A stretch of 61,372 nt of DNA, filler included, from Trichosphaerium sp. ATCC 40318 (GCA_038496445.1; 3 parts of 3 records of this genome joined end to end with filler, not necessarily neighbours in it); one strand, 5' to 3'; shown: positions 1 through 18,697, counted from the first letter of the whole stretch. The notes: generated from the letters alone by a model not told the origin. Numbers and translations are program-made.

Positions 1-684
1 GTAGCACGGCCACTGCGAGGCGAGTTTGTTTTTGGATCTGTGTATCCACAGTACGGTAAATTAATTATGCGTGGTATGATCATATCTTCGCGCTTGGAGC
101 TCAGCATAACGCCTGATAGTGTTTTCGAAAAAGTCACTCGGACATACATCTTGTGTCACAACGTCACGAAAAAATGGAAAAAGCTCATTCAAATTTATGT
201 CCTATAAAAAAAGGTGAGGCTTCATTCACGTGCTTTTTTAACCCTTTTTGACGCCAAAGAAAAATGTGTTTTTGGGTTGCGTTTTAGATTGGCGTACGCG
301 TATAGATTGCGCCGTACCCTAGTGGTAGGACACCTTTAAGTTTCGGAAACTTTGCGCCCATGATATCTACATTTTTGTTATCTCTTTGCGGTTTTTCTAA
401 GCGAAAGGGCCTGTTCTACCTCGCGTGGAGCTCATAAGAGACAATAGCTCTAAAACAGCTGGATCAATGCCCATAACGCCCAGATGGCGTTTATCTAGTC
501 TGTTTACATCCCTCAAGAGGTTGACGTGGAAAGCTGCAAACACGTCAATAAAACAATCAAGACCTAACGCTGATAGGAAGGACGCGAGCGAGTGGGTCTA
601 TAGTTGAAAAAAAAAAAGTGGTTAGATAACAATTTTGTCGTTTGGTAGTTCTCCGGGTACGTTGTCAGTATTGGTGTTTGCCAT
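1..684 (-). CDS. 5' part of a duplicated SAM-LRR gene, continuing beyond the window
   Basis: Mirror of 7946-8631, with ATG at 684 on the minus strand. Confidence 0.6.
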
Positions 685-837
685 GTGTTTGTTAACGAAT
701 GACCATGGGATGGCGTTAACCTGCTGTGCGTGTTTGACTGTTTGTTAAAGTAGATTTGGCGTACATTTCAATGAACATAGGTTTCCAGGCGTTTTTTTTA
801 AAAGAAACTAAAACAAACAACACAATATTCGCAACAA

Positions 838-1912
838 ATGGTGCGTTCGACTGCTGGCGTTTGTTTTTTACAAGTTAGCGAATAGGCTAGCACCAATTTA
901 CAGCTAAAGCAACTCAGTTTGGGCGCTATATGCGATGTATGTGACTTTCCTATCTTTGGCGCTCGCTACAAGTGTATGAGCTGCGATGACTACGATCTGT
1001 GGTGCGTATTTGCCTGTTTTATAGTATTCATCCACTAATTCGTGTTTTATAGCGAATATTGCGAACAAACATACCTAGAGTGCAAGGCACATGATGAACG
1101 GCACTTATTTATGAAAATAATAACGTAATTTTATTGTACTACTTGAAGTGCCACCACTTACTCTGTTTAGGCCCATACCCAAGCGCAATGACAGGTGCTA
1201 AGTTCAATATGGCCTTTTTAGTACTCACAGTGTTTGCTCAAGGCCAAATTTGCAATTTGATATCATGTGCTCCAATATTGACGACACAGGCACGTGTTCT
1301 GATCCCCAACCACACGTACAGCAAGCGCTACAAAAAGACTCTCTATTTTTCATTGAAAACATTGTCAAGTCTTGTGTTAGCAAAAAACCACGTGGCTACT
1401 TTTGCATTGCCATTACATTTTTTTTCTGCCAAAACTTGTTGGCGTCGGTTTTGTTCAACGTTGTAGCCAACCGTTTTGGCTTATTTTTTTGTAGAAGACA
1501 AAGAGCTTGTGCACAAGGGAATGTTATGTTCGTTATGCCAACATCCTGTAATTGGTGTGCGATACATGTGCCTTAATTGTAAAGACTACAATATGTGCCA
1601 AAATTGTGAGCGTACAAAGCGTGATTCACATCCGTTGTCACACATTTTATTAAAAAGTACGTTTTGTCACATGATACTTGTATTTGACGTATTTTAGTGT
1701 CGCACAATGTTCCAGCGCAGTACTTGCGGCTTTGCCACTACCGCTCTCTGTACGATAAAAAAGTGATGTTTGTAGCATGTTTGTTAAGTAGATTGAGTAG
1801 GTAAAGTGCAAGGAACCACGCCTTGGTGAAAGTACTGAGATTTTTTACACATATAACACAATAAATAAGATAATCACCGCCAAGTAATGATATACATGAA
1901 CCCATGAAAGGC
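838..1912 (+). pseudogene. Truncated duplicate of the ZZ-ZZ-GNAT gene; both ZZ fingers present, GNAT domain absent
   Basis: Spliced exons give [28 protein letters not shown] and [28 protein letters not shown]. Homology to the intact copy stops at AACCCTAA (1913-1920). There is a 1-nt exon deletion near 1720 relative to the other copy. Confidence 0.8.
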
Positions 1913-4074
1913 AACCCTAATGGATAAAACTATAAAATAGAAAAAAATATTTATTTGCTATCACTACTAAATACCATGATCATTTAGAACCAAATCATTG
2001 TTATTTCTATGTAGCTACAATATAATACTTTATAAAAATATATTGTATGATAACATAGCTGATATTAAAACTGTTATTTACATCATTTTTTAGTACAAAT
2101 AGCATTTTTTGCATGTTGACATTGAGAAAAAACCTTTATTTTAGCACTAAGATGATATATTCTTTTATAAAAGGTATGTTATATATCTAATAATCAAATA
2201 TAAAAACAATTATGTATGTTATTTTAACATAAGTGGCCTTGATAGACATATATACCATAAAAAAAAATAAAAAAGCTATAATTCTCAATAAAACATCTGT
2301 GTCGCTGCATTAAAAACATCTATTGTATTCATGTTTCACAAGTCATCGACCACCATGCTTGAGATCATGTATGTGCAATAGATTGCAAATATATGATATA
2401 AGTCCAACAAAATAGATGAATTGCATAAACACACACCAAAAAAATTATTGGCACTATAAAAAGCTCTATGCCAATATAATTTTACACTCATGAAAACATC
2501 TCCAAATGGATAGAAAGTAGCCATATAACAAAGATGTATGGCATCAAGAGGTATCATGGAGGCAAAGCTGTTTTTGGCAAAAATGGCATTTTTTTGGTTT
2601 TTTTACCATAAAGTATGATTGTAGGTAGCTTCATCAAGATCATTTATGTATATATAATAAATTACAAGATGATGCCATGATGTTTGTTAATAGGAAAATG
2701 AAGAATCGCACACCATAGATAATATATGGGGGGCTTGGTGCATCAACGAACAATGTCATCATTTTTGGCCAAAAAGGGCACAAACTCAAAATGCTTCTAA
2801 GCCTTCAAATCCAACCATCATTTTTGTTTTTATATAGGCTTATATAAAGCATATAAAAGTGGCATAACATTTAAAGTAAATATTCATAGGGGGTATGGTG
2901 GATGACCACTAAAAAATGAAAAAATGGAGGAAATTTCTACATTTCCTTGATTTTGGATCGCATATATGCCACCCCATCAAATAAACTATATACCTCTTAT
3001 TATTGCTATGCTAGGCACTATATATCCTCAGTCGCCATCGATCCATCATGTTGTTGGCCGTGACCATTTTCAAAAACATGTGCTATAAAAGGTAAAACAT
3101 ATAAATTAATTAATAACTATTCATGATGGATAGGTATGACAAAATAGATGAATGCATTGGATTTCTTGAGCAAAATGGCATACATGTATATGCATAAATG
3201 AATTATAGGTGATCATGTAACTGCGGCCTCCAAGCAAAGATGTGTTCAATTTTTTGCTAAAAAAATCCCATTGGAAAAATCAAAAAAAATCCAAAAATCA
3301 AAGAATGGCTCACCAAATCGACGTATACTGCTATAAAATCCTACAAACCACCAGCAATTGGGTAATTTATGCCAATATATAAGGTACAAAAAACGAAATT
3401 GGCTTAAGCGATATGTTAAGGTATGTGGTAATGCATGGTTCAAATTAAATCCCTAAGATTATTTTATATCTCATAGTCATGAATAGATATGAAAATAAAC
3501 AATATCTCATTATGTTGCCATGTATGTATAGATATGAATTTAAATTACAGTTTAGCTACACATGATATACTAAAAACTTTGTGTATATGAGAAGTGTGCA
3601 TACATATTTTTTTTGTAAAAAAAAAGCCAATTACAAACTCAAAATTGCTTACATCTATATAACTCATCACTATGGATACCTACAAATCAATTATTGCTTG
3701 TACCATGTTTATATGGCCTAATAACATATATGTACATACATAAAGTAATTAAAAATACATTTGTAAATGCAGCCTCCAAACGCAACTGCATGGTAAAAAT
3801 ATTTCAAAATTTGCAAAAAAAAAAAGTTTGCATGTTGCTCACAGGCCATGTAGTGCACGAATATCATTTTCGATGCTGCACACCATAATAATACATGCCT
3901 GTGCCTAGCAGCACAGCCATGAAAGTAGCAAAATCTAATAAAATCGAAAAAGTAGAGGTTTAGGTAACCTTAACCCTAAACCCTAACCCTAACCCTTCCA
4001 CTTAATTTATCAAAAAACCCTACGCGTTCTTAATTTAGCGTTTACAAACGCATTAATTATTGTTCAGGCTCTCA
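1913..4074 (-). repeat. Repeat family A, longest copy (non-coding, CpG-depleted, telomeric-repeat-associated)
   Basis: Reverse complement of the copies at 9079-9892, 10612-12210, 13374-14238 and 14489-14974. Contains (CCCTAA)n at about 3972-3995. Confidence 0.9.
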
Positions 4075-4473
4075 AAACCAAATGCGATCAAATTACTTCT
4101 TTCGTTTATGAAGACACGATGTATTTAACTTATACGTGTTATTTAGGATGTTTGTATTTTGTAATGATCAATAAATAAAATGATGTTGCATTAAATCTGA
4201 ACCAAAGTATCGAATAATATTTTGTGTAATTTATAAAGTATTTTTTATTGAAATCTACAAAAAATACATTAAGAAATGCTATAAAGAATACATAGAGAAT
4301 TCTATATAAAATACATACGCAATTCCAAAAGTAATACTCTAAGAATTCTATGAGTAATACTTACGGAATTTCATATAAATTCAATGGGAATTAAGGAAGA
4401 GTTTTTCCGTCTACTTTTCCCATAGGAAAACAGGGTGGATTACTTAAAAATTCCCATTTTTATTTTACTACTG
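4075..4473 (-). mobile_element. Truncated DNA-transposon end starting CAGTAGTAAAATA after a TA (Tc1/mariner/pogo-like), with degenerate ~23-24 bp subterminal repeats
   Basis: The same end sequence recurs at 12211-12368. It sits at the TA at 4474-4475 and interrupts the gag ORF. No transposase was seen. Confidence 0.6.
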
Positions 4474-4739
4474 TATTGGGATGCTTCCCAATTACCAAAA
4501 TTACTAATGGAACGCAGTTTGTCTAACCAATCTTCAACACTGATTTTATCAACTAACCGATCACCGGTGAACACTCGCAGTGATCTCTTAGAAATAGACG
4601 GGTATTTTGGTGTAACATATACTGGTAGTTTATTTTCAACTAACGGACCACCTTCATTATTGAGTGCCTGTGTCGGCGCCTTAAACGTTGGTTTATACAA
4701 CTCTACTGCTGCTGCGATGTCTTCTAACTGATCTAACAT
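4474..4739 (-). pseudogene. gag: N-terminal fragment of a Ty3/gypsy-type Gag
   Basis: The motif FTGDRLVDKISVEDWLDKLRSISNFGNW resembles retrotransposon Gag (F.G...EDWL..F....NW). It lies downstream of a PBS and LTR. Confidence 0.7.
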
Positions 4740-4840
4740 AATCTCTTCTAACTGGTATACGGCACAGAAACTCTTGGCTGTGAAAAACTTAACGGAAACA
4801 GATGAACTTAAATGAGAATATCAAACAGGTAAAAATCTGA

Positions 4841-5634
4841 CTGTGTCGCCAAATGTTATGATGCTAATATAAAGCAAAGCGTAGTTTTATTGAGGTTTGG
4901 ACAATTACAAAAGGTACAAGTAGATAACAAATATTGTGGGACTTCGGTCGATAGTGTTCAGTGAAAGGTCTAAGGATATCTTCAGTGAATATTAAGTACG
5001 TAACTTAACAATGCATTTCACTGTGAGGTTCATATGTACCGCTTCGCTAAATAATGCATTCCACTTTTAAATATTGCAATTCTTATTTCACTACAATACT
5101 TTGGATTTCCTCATTTTTTCGTATAAAGCGCTTCGCTTCAAAATGCATTCCACTTTGAGGTTTATACATGTACCGCTTCGCTAAATAATGCATTCCACTT
5201 TAGGTATTATATTTTTTTTCTATTATAATATCTTGGATTTTTTCATTTTTTTCACATGAAGCGCTTCGCTTCAGAATGCATTCCACTGTAGGCACCGCAT
5301 ATGTGCCGCTTCGCTGAATAATGCATCCGATATTAGGTGTCGCATGCGTACCGCTTCGCTACAGTATCTTAGATTCTTTTAATTTTTTTTTCGCATTAGG
5401 TTTTGTAATATGGCGCTTCGCTTCAAAATGCATTCCACCATAATCTTTGCATGCCTACCGCTTCGCTACATAATGCATTCCACTTTAGGTCCTGCATGTG
5501 TGCTGCTTCGCTACAAATTGTTGAATTCTATGAGTTTTTCGCTTTTTTGTTGCTTCACTACAGAATGTTGTCGTTGTGACCCTATAATATATTGCTTTGT
5601 GATATATTTCTATACAGTGCTTCGCACTGTTACA
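4841..5634 (-). mobile_element. 5' LTR (4854-5634) and primer-binding site of an LTR retrotransposon; the LTR contains tandem copies of CGCTTCGCT...AATGCATTCCAC
   Basis: On the minus strand the LTR reads TGTAACA...ATAACA, followed by tt and then TGGCGACACAG (PBS). AATAAA lies about 30 nt before the LTR end, and gag follows. The 5634 boundary is less certain than the 4854 boundary. Confidence 0.7.
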
Positions 5635-5698
5635 TAGTACTATATGTATAAGTATCGGCAACATACGTTGCCTACATGCTGTTTAGCAACAACATAGA

Positions 5699-5892
5699 TC
5701 CTAACCCCTAACCTTTAGGGTATAACCCTAATTATTGTTATTGCTGATTAGGGTTAGGGTTAATTCATAGACCCAATTAGGGCTAGGGTTAGGTTTACAA
5801 CCCTAATGGCAAATAGACACTATACAACAGCTAGGGTTAGGGCTAGGGTTTACTATTTACAGGAAACCCTATATTGTTTTAGGGTTAGGGTT
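5699..5892. repeat. Degenerate interstitial telomeric repeats in both orientations
   Basis: CCTAACCCCTAACC and AACCCTAA at 5700-5730, followed by several TTAGGG/CTAGGG runs at 5748-5892. Confidence 0.85.
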
Positions 5893-6125
5893 ATGATTTT
5901 TGCTTTTTTCACTTTTGCCATTAATTTTATTCTACATATTTCTACTGTGTGCTGATTATGCTTAAACAACGACATTGAAATTATTATTATTTATTGGATT
6001 TTTATGGTATTTATCATTTTATAAACATTACACCAACATTTAAGTATGTATCAATTTGTAAAGAAATAAATGTTTACAGAATTACATATTTTAATAACAG
6101 AAGTTTGTACAAAACAATACTAAAA

Positions 6126-7795
6126 TTAATTGATAGAGTCCAACTCTTTTATCATCACCAAAGCATCGGCATAGCTATCTTCTGGAGTTGAGTAATACTT
6201 ATAATCCCATTCCTTAGTTTCAAACCCAAACTTTTTATACAAGTTTTGTGCTGGGAAGTTATACACGCTTACATGTAATGTAATCTAAATACATTAACCA
6301 TTACAACTAACAATAAAATATACCCTTGCACAACCAAGAACAGGTGCAAATTCTACAATGTGACCTAGCAACATAGACGCAATACCTCCACCACTATACT
6401 TTTTTTTTATAGCCAAAGAAATAAGTTCCATTGTTCTATATCTGCGCATACCATAGCAACAATACCCTATAAGCAGTTACTCAATGGTTTTCTTTCAAAT
6501 ATAAACATACCAACAATATACGGAATATTATCTACATACACCTCAGCTACCAAGCATTGACACTTTTTGGAATAAACAAACTTCAAAAAAGTGTCATAAT
6601 CATAAGGTGTAGCAAACGCCTCTTCTTCTATGTCTAATACTGCATCAATATCACCTAAATCAAGCTCTCGCATGGTTGCTATCAATATTAATACTTACAC
6701 AACAGCAAATACAAGCACCACACCTTTAATGGGTTCACGTTTCTTCCTTGGCGGTGCAATTGGCTTTTCACTGCTGTTATAGTGTACAAAAATCTCAGTA
6801 CTTTCACCAAGGCGTGGTTCCTTGCACTTTACCTACTCAATCTACTTAACAAACATGCTACAAACATCACTTTTTTATCGTACAGAGAGCGGTAGTGGCA
6901 AAGCCGCAAGTACCTGCGCTGGAACATTGTGCGACACTAAAATACGTCAAATACAAGTATCATGTGACAAAACGTACTTTTTAATAAAATGTGTGACAAC
7001 GGATGTGAATCACGCTTTGTACGCTCACAATTTTGGCACATATTGTAGTCTTTACAATTAAGGCACATGTATCGCACACCAATTACAGGATGTTTGCATA
7101 ACGAACATAACATTCCCTTGTGCACAAGCTCTTTGTCTTCTACAAAAAAATAAGCCAAACGGTTGGCTACAACGTTGAACAAAACCGACGCCAACAAGTT
7201 TTGGCAGAAAAAAAATGTAATGGCAATGCAAAAGTAGCCACGTGGTTTTTTGCTAACACAAGACTTGACAATGTTTTCAATGAAAAATAGAGAGTCTTTT
7301 TGTAGCGCTTGCTGTACGTGTGGTTGGGGATCAGAACACGTGCCTGTGTCGTCAATATTGGAGCACATGATATCAAATTGCAAATTTGGCCTTGAGCAAA
7401 CACTGTGAGTACTAAAAAGGCCATATTGAACTTAGCACCTGTCATTGCGCTTGGGTATGGGCCTAAACAGAGTAAGTGGTGGCACTTCAAGTTGTACAAT
7501 AAAATTACGTTATTATTTTCATAAATAAGTGCCGTTCATCATGTGCCTTGCACTCTAGGTATGTTTGTTCGCAATATTCGCTATAAAACACGAATTAGTG
7601 GATGAATACTATAAAACAGGCAAATACGCACCACAGATCGTAGTCATCGCAGCTCATACACTTGTAGCGAGCGCCAAAGATAGGAAAGTCACATACATCG
7701 CATATAGCGCCCAAACTGAGTTGCTTTAGCTGTAAATTGGTGCTAGCCTATTCGCTAACTTGTAAAAAACAAACGCCAGCAGTCGAACGCACCAT
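6126..7795 (-). CDS. Protein with two ZZ zinc fingers and a C-terminal RimI/NAT-like GNAT acetyltransferase (multi-exon)
   Basis: Two CxxC..CxxC..CxxC..H..H ZZ motifs. GNAT motifs: [41 protein letters not shown] and [19 protein letters not shown]. Stop at 6126. Confidence 0.85.
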
Positions 7796-7945
7796 TTGTT
7801 GCGAATATTGTGTTGTTTGTTTTAGTTTCTTTTAAAAAAAACGCCTGGAAACCTATGTTCATTGAAATGTACGCCAAATCTACTTTAACAAACAGTCAAA
7901 CACGCACAGGTTAACGCCATCCCATGGTCATTCGTTAACAAACAC

Positions 7946-9089
7946 ATGGCAAACACCAATACTGACAACGTACCCGGAGAACTACCAAACGACAAAATTG
8001 TTATCTAACCCCTTTTTTTTTTTCAACTATAGACCCACTCGCTCGCGTCCTTCCTATCAGCGTTAGGTCTTGATTGTTTTATTGACGTGTTTGCAGCTTT
8101 CCACGTCAACCTCTTGAGGGATGTAAACAGACTAGATAAACGCCATCTGGGCGTTATGGGCATTGATCCAGCTGTTTTAGAGCTATTGTCTCTTATGAGC
8201 TCCACGCGAGGTAGAACAGGCCCTTTCGCTTAGAAAAACGCAAAGAGATAACAAAAATGTAGATATCATGGGCGCAAAGTTTCCGAAACTTAAAGGTGTC
8301 CTACCACTAGGGTACGGCGCAATCTATACGCGAACACGCCAATCTAAAACGCAACAAAAACACATAATTTTTCTTTGGCGTCAAAAAGGGTTAAAAAAGC
8401 ACGTGACTGAAGCCTCACCTTTTTTTATAGGACCATAAATTTGAATGAGCTTTTTCCATTTTTTCGTGACGTTGTGACACAAGATGTATGTCCGAGTGAC
8501 TTTTTCGAAACACTATCAGGCGTTATGCTGAGCTCCAAGCGCGAAGATATGATCATACCACGCATAATTAATTTACCGTACTGTGGATACACAGATCCAA
8601 AAACAAACTCGCCTCGCAGTGGCCGTGCTACAAGCATTGTATCAGCGGTCATTGGCATGTCCGGAGATCAAGTTGCGCGAAAAATAAGTTCCTGGCTGAT
8701 GACCAGCAATGGCGTGCTCAATATTAACTTACAACACTCACGTCTCACTGGAGATGGACTGGGTAAGATGAAATTCTAAACTTAATAGCAAACAGTGTCA
8801 CATCCTTATAGGTGAACTTGTGAGTGCCATTCAGAATTCTCCAACTAGAAACACACTCCAACAAATAGACCTTTCGCACAACGGAATAGACGACGCTGGT
8901 ATCCTTATTATAACGCCTCTTATTTACCACACGCCTTTACGCAGATTGTATTTATCACACAATCTCATCAAGAGTGGCGGAGCCAGTTCAATATTCAATA
9001 TGGCAGCGCAAATGTCGGATGTTATCCAACTAGAATTACTTGATCTTTCTCACAACACTTTACTGGACAGTGAGTCACTGAGAGCCTGA
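7946..9089 (+). pseudogene. SAM-domain plus RI-like LRR protein, 3'-truncated by repeat family A at 9079
   Basis: Exon 8031-8209 reads SLASFLSALGLDCFIDVF...LDKRHLGVMGI (SAM-like). LRRs include LQQIDLSHNGIDDAG, LRRLYLSHNLIKSGG and LELLDLSHN. The stop codon is supplied by repeat sequence. Confidence 0.7.
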
Positions 9090-9892
9090 ACAAAAATTAA
9101 TGCGTTTGTAAACGCTAAATTAAGAACGCGTAGGGTTTTTTGATAAAAAGTGGAAGGGTTAGGTTAAGGTTACCTAAACCTCTACTTTTTCGATTTTATT
9201 AGATTTTGCTACTTTCATGGCTGTGCCGCTAGGCACAGGCATGTATTATTATGGTGTGCAGCATCGAAAATGATATTCGTACACTACATGGCCTGTGAGC
9301 GACACGTGAACTTTTTTTTTTTGTAAATTTTGAAATATTTTTACCATTCAGTTGTGTTTGGAGGTTGCATTTACAAATGTATTTTTAATTACTTTATATA
9401 TGTACATATATGTTATTAGGCCATATAAACATGGTACAAGCAATAATTGATTTGTAGGTATCCATAGTGATGATTTATATAGATGTAAGCAATTTTGAGT
9501 TTGTAATTGGCTTTTTTTTTACAAAAAATATGTATGCACACTTCTCATATACACAACGTTTTTAGTATATCATGTATAGCTAAACTGTAATTTAAATTCA
9601 TATTTATATATACATGACAACATAATAAGATATTATTTATTTTCATATCTATTCATGACTATGAGATATACAATAATCTTAGAGATTTAATTTGAACCAT
9701 GCATTACTGCATACCTTATCATATCTCTTAAGCCAATTTCGTTTTTGTACCTTATACATTGGCATAAATTACCTGATTACTGGAGGTTTGTAGGATTTTA
9801 TAGCAGTATACGTTGATTTGGTGAGCCATTCTTTGATTTTTGGATTTTTTTTTATTTTTCCAATGGGATTTTTTTAGCAAAAAATTGGATAC
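9079..9892 (+). repeat. Repeat family A copy starting at the TGAGAGCCTGAAC terminus
   Basis: Colinear reverse complement of 4074 back to about 3245. Confidence 0.9.
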
Positions 9893-10090
9893 AGACTTAT
9901 AAGGAATTATACTTCAAATGCATACTACAAGATCGTACTTGTGTTGAGGTACGACTATCTAGTTTCGTTGCTACATATGTTTATTGTTTTGATTCAATAG
10001 AAACAACAAGTACTTTGTACAAACACCAAATGAAAACTTGTGTGATGCAGTAAAGGGTATAAAAGAGCTGGATGACTACTGTGCAAATTC

Positions 10091-10297
10091 GGGTTAGGGT
10101 TAAGGTTACCTAAACCTCTACTTTTTTGATTTTATTAGATTTTGCTACTTTCATGGCTGTGCCGCTAGGCACAAGCATGTATTATTATGGTGTGCAGCAT
10201 TGAAAATGATATTCATACACTACATGGCCCGTGAGCGACATGCAAACTTTTTTTATTTGCAAATTTTGAAATATTTTTACCATGCAGTTGCGTTTGG
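10091..10297 (+). repeat. Short family A copy bounded on both sides by TTAGGG seeds
   Basis: Starts GGGTTAGGGTTAAGGTTACC and ends ...GCGTTTGG, followed by TTAGGGTTAGGG. Confidence 0.9.
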
Positions 10298-10611
10298 TTA
10301 GGGTTAGGGACTATGTGATTTTTATTCGCCGAATATCGTCCTGTACGGGCCATCGCGGGTAGGTGCAGAAATGCCAAAGACATTTTTGTGCTTGAATTAA
10401 TATGGCGCTTCATCCTATACTATGTTGCATTAAATACACACATAAAATTATGCTAGGGTTGTGTTGACATTGTGTATTTTTTTCCTTACAAGTTTACAAT
10501 TGACTACTATTGAGCTAGGGTTAGGGCTAGGGTTGAGTTGACATAAGATTTTTTTTTTTTACAAGTTACATTACTGATAATTATTTTATTCAAGGGCCAT
10601 CACAAGTAGGT
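10298..10611 (+). repeat. Repeat family C copy 1 (starts TTAGGGACTATGTG; contains CTAGGGTTAGGGCTAGGG)
   Basis: Near-identical to about 12697-13008. Confidence 0.9.
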
Positions 10612-12210
10612 GTAGGGTTAAGGTTACCTAAACCTCTACTTTTTCGATTTTATTAGATTTTGCTACTTTCATGGCTGTGCTGTTAAGCACAGGCATGTAT
10701 TATTATGGTGTGCAGCATCAAAAATGATATTTGTGCACTACATGGCCTGTGAGCAACATGTGAACTTTTTTTTTTTGCAAATTTTGAAATATTTTTACCA
10801 TGCAGTTGCGTTTGGAGGCTGCGTTTACAAATGTATTTTTAATTACTTTATGTATGTACATATATGTTATTAGGCCATATAAACATGGTACAAGCAATAA
10901 TTGATTTGTAGGTATTCATAGTGATGAGTTATATAGATGTAAGTGATTTTGAGTTTGTAATTGGCTTTTTTTTTTGGTAAAAAATATGTATGCACATTTC
11001 TCATATACACAAAGTTTTTAATATATCATGTGTAGCTAAATTGTAATTTAAATTCATATTTATACATACATGGCAACATAATGAGATATTATTTATTTTC
11101 ATATCTATTCGTGCTTATGAGATATAAAATAATCTTAGGATACTACTACAGAGGGTTAGGGATTTAATTTGAACCATGCATTATCACATACCTTAACATA
11201 TCGCTTAAGCCAATTTCGTTTTTGTACCTTATACATTGGCATAAATTACCCGATTGCTGGTGGTTTGTAGGATTTTATAGCAGTATATGTTGATTTGGTG
11301 AGCCATTCTTTGATTTTTGGATTTTTTTTGATTTTTCCAATGGGATTTTTTTAGCAAAAAATTGGATACATCTTTGCTTGGAGGCCGTAGTTACATGATC
11401 ACCTATAGTTGACTTATGCATATACATGTATGCCATTTTGCTCAAGGAATCCAATGCATTCATTTATTTTGTCATACCTGTCCATCATGAATAGTTATTA
11501 ATTAATTTATATGTTTTACCTTTTATAGCATATGTTTTCAAAAATGGTCACAGCCAACTACATGATGGATCGATGGCAACTGAGGATATATAGTACTTGA
11601 CATAGTAATAATAAGAGGTATACAGTTTATTTGGTGGGGTGGCATATATGCGATCCAAAATCAGGAAAATGTAGAAATTTCCTCCATTTTTTCATTTTTT
11701 AGTGGTTGTTCACCATACCCCCTATGAATATTTACTTTAATTGTTATGCCATCTTAATATACTTTATATAAGCCTATATAAAAACAAAATAATGGTTGGA
11801 TTTGAAGGCTTAGAAGCATTTTGAGTTTGTGCCCTTTTTGGCCAAAAATGATGATATTGTTCATTGATGCACCAGGCCCCCCATATATTATCTATGGTGT
11901 GCGATTCTTTATTTTGCTATTAACAAACATCATGGCATCATCTTGTAATTTTATTATATATATATAGATGATCTTGATGAAGCTACCTACAATCATACTT
12001 TATGGTAAAAAAACCAAAAAAATGCAATTTTTGCCAAAAACAGCTTTGCCTCCATGGTACCTCTTGATGCCATATATCTTTGTTATATGGCTACTTTTTA
12101 TCCATTTGGAGATGTTTTTATGAGTGTAAAATTATATTGGCATAGAGCTTTTTATAGTTCAATAATTTTTTTGGTGTGTGTTTATGTAATTCATCTATTT
12201 TGTTGGACTT
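10612..12210 (+). repeat. Repeat family A copy
   Basis: Colinear with the reverse complement of about 2400-3978. Carries a short insert ending in GGGTTAGGG at about 11140-11162. Confidence 0.9.
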
Positions 12211-12680
12211 CAGTAGTAAAATAGAAATGGGAATTTTTAAGTAATCCACCTTGTTTTCCTATGGAAAAAGTAAACGGAAAAACTCTTCCTTCATTCCCAT
12301 TGAATTTATATGAAATTCCGTAAGTATTACCCATAGAATTCTTAGAGTATTACTTTTGGAATTGCATACAGTACTAAAATAAAAAGAGGAAAAATAAAGG
12401 GAATCCTTACAAAAAATCAAGGGAATTTTAGACCACCAATCCCGGGGTATTTTATCCTAAATAGATGAGGAAATTTCCTTAAAAATCCTTGGGGTAATTC
12501 TTTCAAAAATCCCTAGTGTAATTTCCTCAAAAATCCCTGGTGTAATTCTCTCAAAAATCCCTAATGTAATTCTCTTAAAAATCCCCAGTGTAATTTTCTC
12601 AAAAATCCTTGGTGAATTGCATTAAAAGTCGTACACTAAAACGCAATATTTATTAAAGTTTTACATAGTAATTACAACTA
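12211..12680 (+). mobile_element. Two stacked CAGTA-type transposon ends (12211 and 12369); the second has a 24-bp tandem array at about 12470-12620
   Basis: CAGTAGTAAAATA at 12211 and TA|CAGTACTAAAATA at 12369. The unit CAAAAATCCCTRGTGTAATTYYCT is repeated about 6 times. Confidence 0.6.
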
Positions 12681-12681
12681 T

Positions 12682-13350
12682 TAGGGTTAGGGCATAGGGT
12701 TAGGGACTATGTGATTTTTATTCGCCAAATATCGTCCTGTACGGGCCATCGCAGGTAGGTGCAAAAATGCTGAAGGCATTTTTGTGCTCGAATTAATATG
12801 GCGCTTCATCCTATAATATGCTGCATTAAATACACACATAAAATTATGCTAGGGTTGTGTTGACATTGTGTATTTTTTTCCTTACAAGTTTAGAATTGAC
12901 TACTATTGAGCTAGGGTTAGGGCTAGGGTTGAGTTGACATAAGATTTTTTTTTTTTACAAGTTACATTACTGATAATTATTTTATCCAAGGGCCATCACA
13001 AGTAGGTGTGAAAATGTTAAAGGCATTTTCATATTAGAATCAATCAATAACTTCATTTTATGCTATATTGTATTAAAACCACACATAAAATTACATTAGG
13101 GTTGTGTTGACATTGTGTATTTTTTTCCTTACAAGTTTACAATTGACTACTCTTGAGCTAGGGTTAGGGCTAGGGTTGTATTGACATTAAATGATTATTC
13201 ACCGAACCCACCTAAGCCCTTAGCTGGCTTCGGCGAATATCTTTCGGTGAAATAATAATTTAACCAATAGTATCCAAAAGATAACACAAATTTAATGATT
13301 ATTCGCCGAACCCACCTAAGCTTCAGCGAATATTTTTCGACGAAATAATT
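12682..13350 (+). repeat. Repeat family C copy 2 with an internal partial duplication and two ATTCRCCGAA...TTCRGCGAAT hairpin units
   Basis: Matches 10298-10611. Segment 13010-13185 repeats about 12760-12940. Hairpins lie at about 13197-13238 and 13301-13331. Confidence 0.85.
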
Positions 13351-13373
13351 GTGTATTTATTTCAAGTGAAAGG

Positions 13374-14238
13374 TTAATTTGAACCATACATTACTACATA
13401 CCTTATCATATCACTTAAGCCAATTTCGTTTTTTGCTCCTTATACACTAACATAAATTACCCAATCATTGATGGTTTGTAGGAGTTTATAGCAGTATACG
13501 TTGATTTGGTGAGCCATTCTTTGATTTTTGGATTTTTTTTTGATTTTTCCAATGGGGATTTTTTTTAACAAAAAGTTGAATACATCTTTGCTTGGAGGCT
13601 GCAGTTACACAACAGTCTACATTTCACTTATACATATACATGTATGCCATTTTGCTCAAGGAATCCAATGCATTTATCTATTTTGTCATACCTATCCATC
13701 ATAAATAGTTATTAATTCATTTATATGTTTTACCTTTTATAACATATGTTTTCGAAAATGGTCACAGCCAACACCATGATGGATTGATTGCAATTGAGAT
13801 TATGCAGTATCTAACATAGCAATAATAACAAGTACATAGTTTATTTGGTGGGGTGGCATATATGTGATCCAAAATCAATAAAATACAAATATTTCCTCTA
13901 TTTTTTCATTTTTTACTGGTTGTTCACCATAACCCCTATGAATATTTACTTTAAATGTTATTATATATTTATATACTATATATAAGCTTATATAAAACAA
14001 AAAAATGATGATTGGATTTGAAGGCTTAAAAGCATTTTAAGATCATGCCTTTTTTGAAAAATGATGATGTTATTGTTTGTTGATAACAAGCTTCCACATA
14101 TTATCTATAATGTGCAATTCTTCATTTTTCTATTAATAACCATTATGAAATCATCATATAAATTTATTGTATATACATAAATGATATTGATGAAGTTATT
14201 TGCAAGCATATTTTATGGTAAAAAACCAAAAAAATGGC
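13374..14238 (+). repeat. Diverged (older) family A copy
   Basis: Colinear with 11165-12025, with many C>T and G>A changes. Confidence 0.85.
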
Positions 14239-14488
14239 AGTAACAGTGAAAGTGAAAGTGACAGTGTTATTTTTTTGATAATGAAGATTTTGTTTACAAA
14301 AACCTGTAAAAAAAAAACCATTTACTAAACACAATCTTTAAATTGATTTATTAGATATTAAGTAAAGAGTATTAAAAGTTGTTGTGTATGAACAAACAAA
14401 ATTACCATAGTTAGTGAAAAAAAGGTTTTTGTGTATTTATTGGTTGTTTTGTTAAAGTGGAATTAGGATAAAGGTAGTGTAAAATAGA

Positions 14489-14998
14489 GTTAGGGATTTA
14501 ATTTGAACCATGCATTACCGCATACCTTAACATATCGCTTAAGCCAATTTCGTTTTTTGTACCTTGTACATTGGCATAAATTACCCGATTGCTGGTGGTT
14601 TGTAGGATTTTATAGCAGTATACGTCGATTTGGTGAGCCATTCTTTGATTTTTGGATTTTTTTTGATTTTTCCAATGGGATTTTTTTAGCAAAAAATTGA
14701 ACACATCTTTGCTTGGAGGCCGCAGTTACATGATCACCTATAGTTCACTTATGCATATACATGTATGCCATTTTGCTCAAGGAATCTAATGCATTCATTT
14801 ATTTTGTCATACCTATCCATCATGAATAGTTATTAATTAATTTATATGTTTTACCTTTTATAGCATATGTTTTCGAAAATGGTCATGGCCAACAACATGA
14901 TGGATCGATGGCGACTGAGGATATGTAGTGTCTAGCATAGCAATAATAACAGGTATATAGTTTATTTGGTGGGGTTAGGGTTAGGGTTAGGGTTTAGG
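14489..14998 (+). repeat. Family A copy starting at an internal TTAGGG and capped by (TTAGGG)3 TTTAGG at 14975-14998
   Basis: Begins TTAGGGATTTAATTTG. Homology ends at TTTGGTGGGG, where telomeric repeats begin. Confidence 0.9.
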
Positions 14999-15313
14999 AG
15001 TATGTACCAACCGTATTTTTTTGTACACTACTCTACCCTGTTGTAAAATTTTTTCGATTTTTTTGGCTTTTTTTTATGTTTTTTGCACATACAATCTCCC
15101 TGTAGGGTTACAGCAAGATAGGGTTTTTTACAAACCCAAGACCTCATCAACAATCTTGCAAACTGTCAAATTCTCATTTTTTTCTTACTTTTTTAAAACA
15201 GGCGAAATTTCCGGTGCACATTTCGAAACACGAAATATTCCTGTCTATTTCTCAACGCGCTTGTTGGGGAAAAAAAAGCCTCATTTTACTTTTTTGACTT
15301 TTCATAAATCAAG

Positions 15314-18300
15314 AATGAGCTCAGATAAAGACCTCTCTCTCATAAATATTGAGTTTTCTGATGAGAATGAGCCCTCCAAAGAAGCTGATGGTAAGTCCAG
15401 GCTCAGGAGGAAAAAACTACTAGGTACTAACCTCTTTTTTTACTCTTTTTTTTTTTAAAACCCCCTTTATTAGTCTTATTTTAATTTTTAAAGACTAATA
15501 AAGGGGGTTTTTTTGCTTTTAAATGGTTTTTTCAAAGACCCTAATTTTTCAAATAAATTTCGAAAAAAACCGACGGTTTTTGTACACGGTTTTCATGTGT
15601 ACGATTTTTTCGTTACCATGCGTTTTTTTTGTATGGTAGAACCAAACTCAAACAAGGGGTTTTGTAACACGCAGAACGGTGTGCATTGTTTTTTGTTTGG
15701 TTTTGGTTCACACTGTTTTATTTTGCTTTAATTTTCAACAGCGAGCTCGCTGCGGCATTAAAACACGTATATCGCGTGTTCAAAAGTTGTGCTAGTTGGC
15801 GGTTGGTTTTGGTACACAATTAAATTGTGTACTTTTTTTTAAATATTTTTTTGTTGTTTTGCTTTTTTTACAGACTGCGAGCTTGCTGTACGATTTTAAA
15901 CACGGTTTTTATGTGTTCGTACATGACCGCGAGCTCGCGGTCGGTTTTTGTACACATAAAAAGTGTGTACTTTTTTAAAAACCGTTTTTTTTTGAAAGTC
16001 TTGCTTTATAACTGACTGCTTGCTTGGTATATGGTATACAACACATGTTTATTGTGTTCGTACCTGACCTCGAGCTCGCGGTCGGTTTTCGTACACATAA
16101 AAAGTGTGTACTTTTTAAAAAACCGTTTTTTTTTGAAAGTCTTGCTTTATAACTGACTGCAAGCTTGCCGTTGCGTACGTAACACGTTTTTAATGTGTTT
16201 GTTTCCGACCGCGAGCTCGAGGTCATATTTTTTACACGAAAAACCCGTGTTTGTATTTTCGTTAGTTGTAACCATTTGATGTGCCATCTTCTAATACTCT
16301 TTTTAGCTCCAACAAGCCCTGGTTGGATGGTTGTGAGTACCCATGGAAACCACAACACTGAAAAAAAAATTGTGGGTACTCTAATTGGAGAACACAGAGA
16401 TGTTATCTTTGGTTTTGAGTAAGTTGGTTTTTTTTTTTTTTTTTTTTTTTGTGTTGTGCATTTTTTTTTTTACCCATTTAATTTTGCGTTCGACGCAACA
16501 CGCGCGGCGCATGTTCGTAAACGTAGCTGCCATTTATTTTTATTTATTTTTTGTTTTTTTTTTTTTTTTTTATTTTTAATTCATTTCAATTAATTTATCT
16601 ATGTAGAGGTGTTATCATAGCCAACCAGTTGGTTTATGCTAAAACCATGCCCATCAAAAGGATGAAGAGATGCCTAAATGGGTTTTTTGCTGCCAGCTTT
16701 GATAATGTGTTGGAGTCCCAAATAACTCCTAACAACAAGCTGAAGGCAGCATTCAAGGTACGTTTTCCGATACATACACGCGTGGGCTGTGTTTGTTTTA
16801 TTTCGTTTTTTTTTTTTTTTTTTTTTTTTTGTTTTTTTTTTTTTTCTGATTTTTTTTTTTTTGATTATTTTTTGATTTTTTTCCTAAAGTATTCATAACA
16901 CAGTTTTCATGTGTCGAATGTGTGACCGCGAGCTCGCGGTCGTGTACGAACACTTAAATATCCTGTTGTAAAATCGTCGGCTTTTAGGTTTTTTTGTTTT
17001 TTTTTTAAATTAATTAATTTGTTTCTTTAGGAGAGATTTCCATTTGTTGAAGGAGTAGACCAACTGCAGAAGTTTATAGAAGATGTCAAAAAAATCTACT
17101 CCTCGGATGAAGAAAAGTGGTGGAAGCCGATGCACTTCGAAGGCAACTACACCAGAGATTACAAGGAGCACGAACCCATGCCGAGAGAACACGGAGATGA
17201 GGAATCGAAGGTAGAGGAAAAGGAGAGGAATGGATGGATTATAAGCTGCAAGTGGAGACAGTTGTATTGGCAGGTGCTACTTTGGACTGGCATATTCTAC
17301 ACAGCCATGGGACTTCATGTCACAGATTCTTGGTACTACATTGCCCTTCTTTTGGTCCATTTTAGAGATTCCTTGAGCTTTGGCAATGATTCAGATTTCC
17401 ATCTCTTTGTGGAGTAAGTAACAATTTTCGCGATATTTTTTTAACACGCGTTCTATGCGTTCGAAAACGAACGTTGTCGTTTTTTTTTTTTTTTTTGTTT
17501 TTTTTTTTTTTGTTTTTTTTTTATTTTTAACTTTTATGTAGCTACATGAAGTCAGGCACCAATAAATTGAATGGCTGCATCATAAAGTCATCAATAAAAA
17601 AGGCCTTGCTAAGAGGGATTGCTGCCAACTCTATCAACAAGAAGTATCTGAGAGTGAAGAAGCCCTCATTTTACAAAGGCCCCTTGGACATGTCACACAT
17701 AGCTTGTTTTTTGAATGTCAGAGGAGTCAACCCCAGGAACATTATACAGAAGATGCCTATTTATGAAACCTTTACCAAAAGGTTTGTGCTTTGCCCTATG
17801 CCTATTGTTTGGTGTGATGAGTACAATACAGACCCTATTGTTGGCTTTGGAGTTGGAGATGGAGCACACTGTCTTTTGACAGAGTTGGCGTACGTTCTCG
17901 AATATTTTCGAACATGTGTTTTACGTGTTGGTCGACCGACCGCGAGCTCGCGGTCGTGTTCGAACACGAGATTTTCCTGTCGTAAAAACTCGAACGACGA
18001 ATCAGTTTTTTTTTTTTGTTTTTCCTTATTGTTCAATTGTTTCTTACTTGTTTGCCTTAGACAAAATGCAGCTAAAACCTGCAAATTTGCAATCAAAAAT
18101 GTGGAGTGGATAAATCCTTTCGCCAAGATGCAAGCGATAGCGATCTACTGCACCAAGATCAACTTTTTGCAAAGTCTGACCACTCCAGACTCCAAGGTGG
18201 ATCGCTACCGCCACCTGTTCAAGATGTGGTGCGACGACGCGGGCCAGGTCTTCGATTACCAAGCGGAGGCGGGAGATATAGGTAAGGTGAATTTTGCGAT

Positions 18301-18375
18301 ATGGGGAGCCAGCAGAGTCAAACCTCAGCTCAGTCCTGCTGAATGGAAAGAGGTGAGGGTTGTTTTTTTTTTTAA

Positions 18376-18407
<32 letters not shown>

Positions 18408-18697
18408 CGCAAGTATTTTTAAACAGAAGTTTCGCGTGTCGTAAATCGCACCGCGAGCTCGCGGTCGCGTGCGAACACTAAAATACTCTGTTGTAAAACT
18501 GACGATTTTTAGTTTGTATTTTTTTTTTATTTGTATGTTATAATGATTGTTTTGTTTAGTTTTTGGTCAAGATGAATCTATACTTTCCATATGTGACCAA
18601 CTGGAAAGAAAGCAAGCAGTTTGTTAAGGCTGGCATGTTTTTTGAGCCATTAGACAGTGCTCTGATAGCAGAATTGGTTGCATCTGCTGAAAATGTG
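15314..18697 (+). CDS. Multi-exon gene with a ParB/Sulfiredoxin-like domain, 3' end lost in the gap; probably element-borne
   Basis: Exons at about 15314-15390, 16307-16418, 16607-16757, 17030-17413, 17541-17889, 18061-18351 and 18560-gap splice in frame via GT-AG. The segment PMPIVW...FGVGDGAHCLLTELA...AIAIYCTKINFLQSLTTPD resembles ParB (PI.V...DG.HR..A...N.....T..D). Confidence 0.6.
15739..16260. repeat. 141-bp tandem repeat in intron 1, each unit carrying the GACCGCGAGCTCGCGGTC palindrome or a variant
   Basis: Palindrome starts at 15925, 16066 and 16207 give an exact 141-nt period. Confidence 0.9.

Follow-up and report, generated by a model that had tools for sequence, protein, structure and literature searches.

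Degenerate islands of TTAGGG are said to lie at the borders of human subtelomeric duplicons, an observation reportedly made by Flint in 1997 and by Linardopoulou in 2005. Other chromosome ends are built from blocks joined at similar tracts: in N. castellii a short interstitial telomeric sequence is the initiation point of TelKO addition (PMC6778800), the TALT blocks of C. elegans carry telomere-like sequence on their flanks (PMC4595603), and in Magnaporthe break-induced replication (BIR) takes place at MoTeR arrays and in TERT knockouts, with interstitial tracts of at least three units breaking in MoTeR arrays and stable tracts having at most two (PMC7367193). Retroelements also extend chromosome ends, and among these Athena and Coprina are defined by an endonuclease-less reverse transcriptase (RT), a reverse-complement telomeric tract and adjacent hammerhead motifs (PMC8557442), while endonuclease-deficient Penelope-like elements have also been described for Mycosphaerella (PMC4522978). 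Here we analyze a stretch of 61,372 nucleotides, filler included, from Trichosphaerium sp. ATCC 40318 (GCA_038496445.1; parts of three records joined with filler), referred to as the window, in which positions 1,913 to 14,998 hold a chain of repeat modules that begin after TTAGGG. The original prediction offered two explanations for this chain, a non-autonomous family of telomere-priming elements of the Athena/Coprina kind or repeated cycles of breakage, healing and template switching, and it is the second that we prefer. In our judgment the chains belong to a known kind, that of subtelomeric patchworks bounded by interstitial telomere seeds and formed by TALT/TelKO-like capture, of which they would be an unusually clear natural example.

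The module structure was dissected by self-comparison of contig C512, which is contained in full as bases 1-18697 of the window, and by its comparison with 18 other contig ends. Six seed-led families were resolved, each with one fixed first base: module A (at least 644 bp) begins with TTAAGGTTACC, B (1857 bp) with ATTTAATTTG, C (at least 495 bp) with ACTATGTG, F with ATACTACTACAGAGG, H (1226 bp) with ATCTATG, and unit E (~9.4 kb) with TTTAGGAGTATG. Of these six, all but E are non-coding. The 479-bp module X, which begins with CAGTAGTAAAAT, has a start that is fixed but seedless, so that it acts like the end of an ordinary transposon and provides an internal control. Matches to the seed-led families across the assembly (70.3 Mb in 642 contigs, eukaryotic) start alike and end at scattered points. 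For B, 25 of 28 begin at query base 1 and end between 53 and 1055 of a 1055-base query, and copies in the window and 18 loci, when measured against the full 1857-bp reference, end between 47 and 1857. Family A gives 30 of 34 matches beginning at base 1-3 with ends from 66 to 541, family C gives 18 of 21 beginning at base 1 with ends from 60 to 501, and 21 of the 23 long matches to the first 798 bases of E begin at base 1. The polarity described in the original prediction, of fixed starts after TTAGGG and variable, re-capped ends, therefore holds in the window and genome-wide.

Telomeric repeats are present in the window far in excess of expectation, with 32 copies of TTAGGG compared to 6.7 expected and seven dimers compared to none. 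When the starts of all six families were tallied in the window and 18 loci, a telomere-like seed lay directly ahead of 61 of 65, against a background of 0.34% at random positions; genome-wide random breakpoints lacking seeds were not what was found. The seeds are 5-26 nt long and never exceed about four units, and the module starts of five unrelated families have nothing in common beyond TTAGGG. A strict pattern also places a seed after 18 of 53 module ends (background 1.1%), and judged by eye the proportion is about two thirds, the strict count being lower because the recurrent A(519)/TTAGGG/B junction escapes the pattern (numbers in parentheses give the last base of a truncated module). The recurring sites and junctions first listed for the window are all there, displaced by no more than a few bases. 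TTAGGG followed by ATTTAATTTG is present at 11156 and 14490, TTAGGG followed by ACTATG at 10304 and 12700, and capped truncations at 10297/10298 (TTTGG/TTAGGG) and 14974/14975 (GGTGGGG/TTAGGG). The third recurrent start, GGGTTAAGGTTACC, is real and lies at 10097 and 10615, since the positions 10091 and 10612 first given for it are those of the preceding seed. The A-B junction at 11134-11161 contains a 16-nt stub of module F. The TTAGGG at 1915-1920, at the start of the predicted range, is no cap at all, being internal to B and present in every long B copy.

The chains have a consistent place and direction in the genome. The G-rich strand points outward at all 19 large contigs with modules near their start (C2, C3, C13, C26, C32, C46, C52, C66, C88, C92, C100, C102, C121, C161, C170, C237, C252, C263 and C289) and also at four large contig ends of known length (C20, C59, C91 and C157). 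The chains lie within ~13 kb of contig ends, and a few module copies are internal or inverted (C154, C159 and C51). Because the G-strand runs outward at contig ends, the chains are subtelomeric and not interstitial, and the statement that the modules are now interstitial is not upheld.

What kind of template was copied to produce such chains? Unit E obeys the same rule as the small modules despite its size and gene content. Its first base follows seeds of 12-26 nt joined to at least four different partners, namely ragged full-length B ends, B(477) in the window, module C ending at base 130 on contig C170 and module C ending at base 244 on contig C3, and truncated copies span bases 1-96 and 1-544. 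On its G-strand E has a multi-exon gene (window 15316 onward, with its continuation in loci L030, L032 and L033) and on its C-strand a convergent, intron-bearing one; the copies of E on C610 and C616 are collinear through the C-strand introns, which are thus retained. Moreover, blocks are copied as composites. The A(519)/TTAGGG/B junction is present at nine or more places with different sequences ahead of A and with B ending at 62, 204, 334, 356, 437, 441, 1264 or 1531, and this recurrence with varied partners and B ends indicates that copying from the start of A ran through an older junction.

Single-copy genic DNA has also been copied into the chain from a DNA template. The segment termed G', at the left edge of C512, is an inverted copy of window positions 6723-8631, a source that, contig C161 (allelic or overlapping) aside, is single-copy, and it reproduces collinearly intergenic DNA together with the intron-bearing ZZ-finger gene and the first part of a leucine-rich repeat (LRR) gene that runs the opposite way. 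G' is joined to base 1531 of B via a 4-nt CCTT microhomology with no added repeat. At 9078/9079 an exon of the LRR gene is joined to base 400 of X, again seedless. Features of this sort are marks of microhomology-mediated template switching on DNA. The B(477)/(TTAGGG)3/E junction of the window is identical to the seed and E on contig C52, which makes C52 a possible donor, and a 3' end terminating in GGGG could then have paired directly within the donor seed.

We hypothesize that the chains arise through many rounds of seed-primed, DNA-templated re-extension of an end from other chromosome ends, a reading that we hold to be somewhat more probable than all others together. A chromosome end would first erode or break inside a subtelomeric block, and the resulting 3' end would either keep an existing G-rich patch or gain one to four TTAGGG units from telomerase. 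The short G-strand tail would then pair with an interstitial CCCTAA/TTAGGG seed of another end, or of its own, and DNA synthesis would proceed outward from this seed as break-induced replication or template switching, an event also known as 'telomere capture'. Copying would continue through whatever is distal in the donor, older junctions included, and later erosion would leave ends at arbitrary points. Since copying would begin exactly at the donor seed, every acquired block would have the same first base. Two points in this scheme are inferred: the source of the TTAGGG would be telomerase and not the seed of the donor, and synthesis would be carried out by a replicative, BIR-like polymerase and not by a reverse transcriptase.

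This re-extension scheme has close counterparts, and for each of its steps there is published evidence from other systems. As in TALT, TelKO, Y' and Magnaporthe BIR, blocks of ordinary DNA are flanked by short telomere-like tracts of which the tract is the initiation point, the blocks share one orientation across many chromosome ends, those that were truncated have been capped anew, and interstitial tracts have no more than about four units. A DNA template is indicated here too, given that the copies include introns, older junctions and genes from either strand, with the caveat that G' lies at a contig edge. The differences from these systems are that the present assembly is wild-type and not from telomerase mutants, that the donor blocks number at least six, all unrelated, where the others have one, and that many stubs of 16-100 nt occur. 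Human subtelomeric duplicons reportedly show the same end-oriented interstitial telomere tracts at block borders within shared patchworks; the present patchworks differ in the size of their blocks, which is much smaller (from tens of bp to 9 kb), in the far greater number of blocks at each end and in starts that are sharp to the base. If re-extension from seeds is the correct explanation, the chains would be a natural, base-resolution record of more than 100 'erode, seed, recapture' events at some twenty chromosome ends, and priming by very short seeds, known mainly from telomerase mutants and one fungal pathogen, would shape normal subtelomeres.

Several observations weigh against such DNA-templated re-extension. 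The seed homology of only 5-26 nt is short for classical BIR. Stubs that begin at base 1 and measure 16, 47, 56 and 62 nt are present in the window and 18 loci, with others of ~60-66 nt among the genome matches, and such very short stubs would also fit a poorly processive reverse transcriptase. The junctions are read from the assembled contigs. G' lies at a contig edge and C512 overlaps C161 before forking from it, so part of the layout of C512 may reflect a path taken by the assembler and not a single molecule. A search of all 70 Mb for long TTAGGG arrays found no perfect run of five or more units, so that true termini are never observed. Finally, while there is no RVT_1 match on C512, in agreement with the original prediction that the window has no RT, and none among open reading frames (ORFs) of at least 180 aa in the 18 chain-bearing loci (~160 kb), the genome-wide scan used RVT_1 and no search with a Penelope-specific RT profile was made, so that a trans-acting copy elsewhere is possible.

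The short stubs lead to an alternative hypothesis of RNA-templated terminal addition, in which C-strand transcripts ending in CCCUAA anneal to the G-overhang and are reverse-transcribed, and incomplete cDNAs are capped by telomerase; the transcripts would derive from non-autonomous Athena/Coprina- or MoTeR-like elements or from read-through of existing arrays. We regard this as unlikely overall, though it may hold for the short non-coding modules. The polarity is exactly as it would predict, with the fixed start representing the RNA 3' end and the variable ends 5' truncations, the stubs are many and very short, and A, B, C, F and H do not code. More than 150 RVT_1 matches genome-wide could act in trans, and a weak TERT RNA-binding-domain match, just above cut-off, suggests that telomerase is present in the genome. 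Against this stand the lack of an RT in the window or the ~160 kb of chains, the five unrelated module starts with TTAGGG alone in common, the copying of composite junctions as units, and the presence of E and G' in the same chain even though their introns are kept and their genes lie on both strands. An Rfam scan of both strands of the window detected no hammerhead ribozyme at E ≤ 5, ARAGORN detected no tRNA-like part, and a single GIY-YIG match was obtained genome-wide. Among the ~57 module-bearing contigs an RVT_1 match lies near modules only on C441 and C1, of which the one on C441 alone was inspected. The C441 RT, which adjoins (TTAGGG)3, was rejected as a module partner because it belongs to an interrupted long terminal repeat (LTR) gag-protease-RT, and the RT on C422 was rejected as being of a long interspersed nuclear element (LINE)/LTR type with RNase H.

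Comparison with the defining features of known telomeric retroelements leads to a similar result. If the modules are read antisense, a telomere-complement tract is found at the centromere-facing end (61/65 seeded starts, 19/19 outward), and truncations are capped, many variable ends being followed by 1-4 telomeric units. These chains accordingly resemble Athena, Coprina and Terminons in telomeric location, single orientation, the telomere-repeat complement facing the centromere and capped distal truncations. Of the features of endonuclease-less Penelope-like elements, however, the tract, the orientation and the capped truncations are the only ones seen: there is no RT ORF, hammerhead or common 3' region, and E is intron-bearing with its main gene on the 'wrong' strand for a Terminon. 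The chains share with MoTeR and FoTeR (PMC7367193, PMC12857005) arrays separated by one or two TTAGGG units, capped truncated copies and non-autonomous partners, but no ORF for an RT or restriction-like endonuclease was found in or near them, and no distal variant tract of the TTCGGG/TTTGGG type, the distal ends of B and E showing mixed TAGGG/CCCTA motifs instead. The Penelope-like retroelement reading is therefore not supported. The same applies to the proposed non-autonomous Athena/Coprina-like family, given the absence of an RT near the chains and of a hammerhead, the unlike starts, and the fact that a 9.4-kb intron-bearing unit and composites obey the rule. The signature of a fixed start after TTAGGG with a variable, capped end is not by itself diagnostic of telomere-priming retroelements, which calls for caution in genome scans. 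A different interpretation of the modules, as hAT-like miniature inverted-repeat transposable elements (MITEs) beginning TAGGG, was dropped because there is no matching inverted end and the seed length varies.

A further alternative arises from the gene content of E, a conserved unit of two genes, ~9.4 kb long, which some 20 chromosome ends carry in ~21 copies with a fixed left end; its distal part is seen in two copies only, on C438 and C610. The multi-exon gene on the G-strand has no function assigned. The C-strand gene, which in L030 (C438:3571-10000) runs on the plus strand from 3968 to 6447 in three stop-free pieces, is without a sequence match in Pfam, NCBIfam or the PDB. The E exons, searched singly and not as a joined spliced model, have no Pfam match, and one exon is also without protein-atlas neighbours. 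A diverged paralogue, E2, on C609 (L029) and C574 has both genes in the same arrangement, with 67% and 46% amino-acid identity in the exons of the C-strand gene and 33% in the partner gene. An Arg box, R-H and a KYY motif are conserved across E, E2 and four database homologues, the position of the first catalytic His being occupied by Ser, Phe or Trp. By protein-language features the nearest named clusters are ResT/TelK, NDC10_II, DUF3504, DUF3435 and Phage_integrase (scores 0.88-0.92). An exhaustive profile search of 1.84 billion representative proteins returned five relatives at E ≤ 0.001, of which one is a large fibronectin-repeat protein and probably spurious and two others have a C-terminal chromodomain, leaving about four credible relatives; a word-index protein search returned none for the recombinase-like exon or for homologue P0004. 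AlphaFold models are weak, with a predicted local distance difference test (pLDDT) score of 33 for the exon as a single sequence and of 47 with a 7-row alignment. In a Foldseek search with a low-confidence model of P0004, the leading matches were XerH, Cre, Tn1549 integrase and type IB topoisomerases (best E 0.047, probability 0.90). These weak lines point to a tyrosine recombinase and are a lead rather than a finding.

Could such an enzyme have built the chains? It might recombine TTAGGG-type sites, insert E into telomeric tracts and join module starts, as the true sites, to pseudo-sites within other modules. This is very unlikely in our estimation, and the evidence is divided. The motifs of the C-strand gene (GG-x-RRQ, RH/RR and KYYN), the tyrosine-recombinase kinship of all its nearest named protein-language clusters, the leading Foldseek matches of its homologue and the conservation of the two-gene unit as E2 are all as expected, all copies of the gene lie on chain-bearing contigs and always on the C-strand, and the inverted TAGGG...CCCTA motifs at the distal ends of B and E would suit a core site. 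Yet sequence searches are blank, the structure models are of low confidence (pLDDT 33 and 47), and the first catalytic histidine is not conserved. Nor do the junctions look like crossovers: seed variation of 5-26 nt fits telomerase or slippage better than a fixed site, truncation points have little in common beyond a few G or T bases, and the joints of B to G' and of 9078 to X are without any TTAGGG. E does resemble Cryptons: it encodes a recombinase-like protein, has a family of diverged paralogues, and its left boundary is fixed at TTAGGG, a short direct repeat. It differs in that its recombinase identity is weakly supported, its copies lie at chromosome ends only, its right boundary is seen in two copies, and no excision or empty site is shown. 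That E is a telomere-repeat-specific Crypton-like element, whose recombinase acts on TTAGGG seeds to insert E and shuffle neighbouring blocks in place of BIR or reverse transcription, is thus a long shot; if true, what the chains record would be site-specific recombination at telomeric repeats. A recombinase-like gene confined to chain-bearing ends merits its own study in any case.

The architecture of C512 itself requires a separate reading. The contig is AT-rich (26-42% G+C) with spliced genes that have short introns, and it consists of two arms of opposite polarity that diverge at ~5712, the G-rich strand being the minus strand in 1-5711. The leftward arm reads, on the minus strand, seed, H, X, seed, A, seed, B(1531) and G'. 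The rightward arm, on the plus strand, begins with a motif cluster and 3.2 kb of single-copy genic DNA (5891-9078), continues after 9078 as X stub, A, B(204), A(198), (TTAGGG)2, C(304), A(519), a 16-nt F stub and B(1044), and concludes with X, C, old B, B(477), (TTAGGG)3 and E. Window positions 3473-9078 are collinear within 15 bp and at ~100% identity with C161:1-5605, the start of a 146-kb contig, and the two fork at 9078 inside the LRR-gene exon. On the best reading C512 is the subtelomere of one chromosome end, that at the start of C161. Two outward-pointing subtelomeres separated by 3 kb are unlikely as a chromosome; more likely the right arm continues the inverted copy G', which the assembler threaded through the original G, and C512 would then be a single chain of ~18 kb at the C161 end. 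The overlap with C161 and the inverted copy at 1-1911 suggest a fold-back inverted duplication at that end, possibly misthreaded by the assembler.

These features could also be taken to mean that the junctions are chimeras produced by assembler jumps between repeats. C512 does share 5.6 kb with the start of C161 at ~100% before forking at 9078, it has two outward arms and an inverted copy at its edge, and all contigs end inside repeats and none in telomere repeats. This explanation is nevertheless extremely improbable, because junctions of the same types are found again on many independent contigs with 3-15% divergence, the polarity and seed rule are far beyond chance, and an assembler would not put TTAGGG at 61 of 65 block starts. 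The genome-wide seed rule is independent of the arm order on C512. Assembly-wide there are 67 runs of three TTAGGG units, and real telomeres are either absent from the assembly or irregular. Seeds often blend TTAGGG with TTTAGGG, CTAGGG and TTAGAG.

Features of C512 and their positions in the window.
Feature	Position	Strand	Remarks
G'	1..1911	-	98% identical to source; CCTT joint to B, without telomeric cap
Module B, bases 1-1531 of 1857-bp reference	1909..3450	-	TTAGGG at 1915-1920 internal to B
Single TTAGGG seed	3451..3456	-	Recurrent A(519)/B junction
Module A, bases 1-519	3455..3973	-	
Telomeric seed, 22 nt (~3.5 units)	3974..3994	-	Ahead of A
Module X, 479 bp	3995..4473	-	CAGTAGTAAAAT start fixed, without telomeric seed; resembles ordinary transposon/MITE end
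Module H	4474..5699	-	Seed at 5700-5713 precedes; 133- and 152-bp tandem repeats inside
Cluster of short TTAGGG, CTAGGG and CCCTAA motifs	5715..5890	+	Inner subtelomere border
Single-copy chromosome DNA	5891..9078	.	Identical to C161:2419-5605
Acetyltransferase-like gene	6129-6694	-	Within single-copy DNA
ZZ-finger gene	within 5891..9078	-	Intron-bearing
LRR gene	within 5891..9078	+	Cut at 9078
X stub, bases 400-479	9079..9156	+	Joint to 9078 without telomeric seed
Module A, bases 1-519	9164..9680	+	Seed GGGTTAGG precedes
Module B, bases 1-204	9685..9887	+	Degenerate seed TTAGAG precedes; end uncapped
Module A, bases 1-198	10100..10297	+	GGGTTAGGG precedes; truncation at TTTGG
(TTAGGG)2 seed	10298..10309	+	
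Module C, bases 1-304	10310..10613	+	
Module A, bases 1-519	10618..11136	+	TAGGG precedes
Module F stub, 16 nt	11139..11154	+	Between two seeds; read as aborted copy
Module B, bases 1-1044	11162..12210	+	GGGTTAGGG precedes; cut by X
Module X, bases 1-155	12211..12365	+	24-bp tandem array at 12472-12627 follows
Telomeric seed: (TTAGGG)2, CATAGGG, TTAGGG	12681..12705	+	
Module C, long copy	12706..13200	+	Internal duplication
Older B subfamily copy, 85% identity	13374..14236	+	Without seed; upstream context shared with C614
Module B, bases 1-477	14496..14975	+	TTAGGG precedes; truncation at GGTGGGG
(TTAGGG)3 seed	14975..14992	+	Junction with E identical on C52
Start of unit E	14993..18697	+	Plus-strand multi-exon gene of unknown function; convergent recombinase-like gene beyond contig end

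Other repeats accompany the chains. Module X, whose three copies in the window are listed above, cuts other modules and also the recombinase-like gene of E2, and tandem arrays of 23 and 24 bp accompany it (4250-4370 and 12472-12627); X probably represents one end of a DNA transposon or MITE. Like C512, contig C441 is an inverted duplication. In L048 (C441:7001-15000), at 3745-6670, the RT gene of an LTR retrotransposon is interrupted by ~2.9 kb between 125-bp inverted repeats, which take in the YVDD codons. A two-exon ORF at 5334-6367 of the same locus carries the zinc-binding loop of a His-Me finger (I-PpoI-like) homing endonuclease (PF05551, 27.9 bits) and adjoins a copy of X and a (TTAGGG)3 tract.

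Short TAGGG and CCCTA motifs, oriented both ways and with the palindrome TAGGGTTTAAACCCTA among them, form clusters in the distal 120 bp of B (for example L032, oriented, 3880-3990), in distal E (L030, oriented, 6190-6420) and at window positions 5700-5890. The motifs are spaced 20-40 bp apart with a recurring TTCA-TGAA-like motif adjoining, and the clusters could be protein-binding or recombination sites. A palindromic element of ~90-140 bp, with CGCGAGCTCGCG at its centre and CGAACAC/GTGTTCG arms, sits in introns of both E genes, usually beside a long T run. Six copies of the CGCGAGCTCGCG palindrome occur in the window (15928, 16069, 16210, 16927, 17941 and 18452) against 0.01 expected, others occur in introns of the C-strand gene in L030, and the element looks like a MITE or an introner-like element. 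The T runs in E were considered as stacked poly(A) retrocopies, an idea that was dropped because they are the intron polypyrimidine tracts of the plus-strand gene. Lastly, a perfect hairpin of ~100 bp at 15445-15550 is a dispersed short repeat found on many contigs (E query 453-558), and its Rfam matches to PK-repZ and CopA are weak and at chance level.

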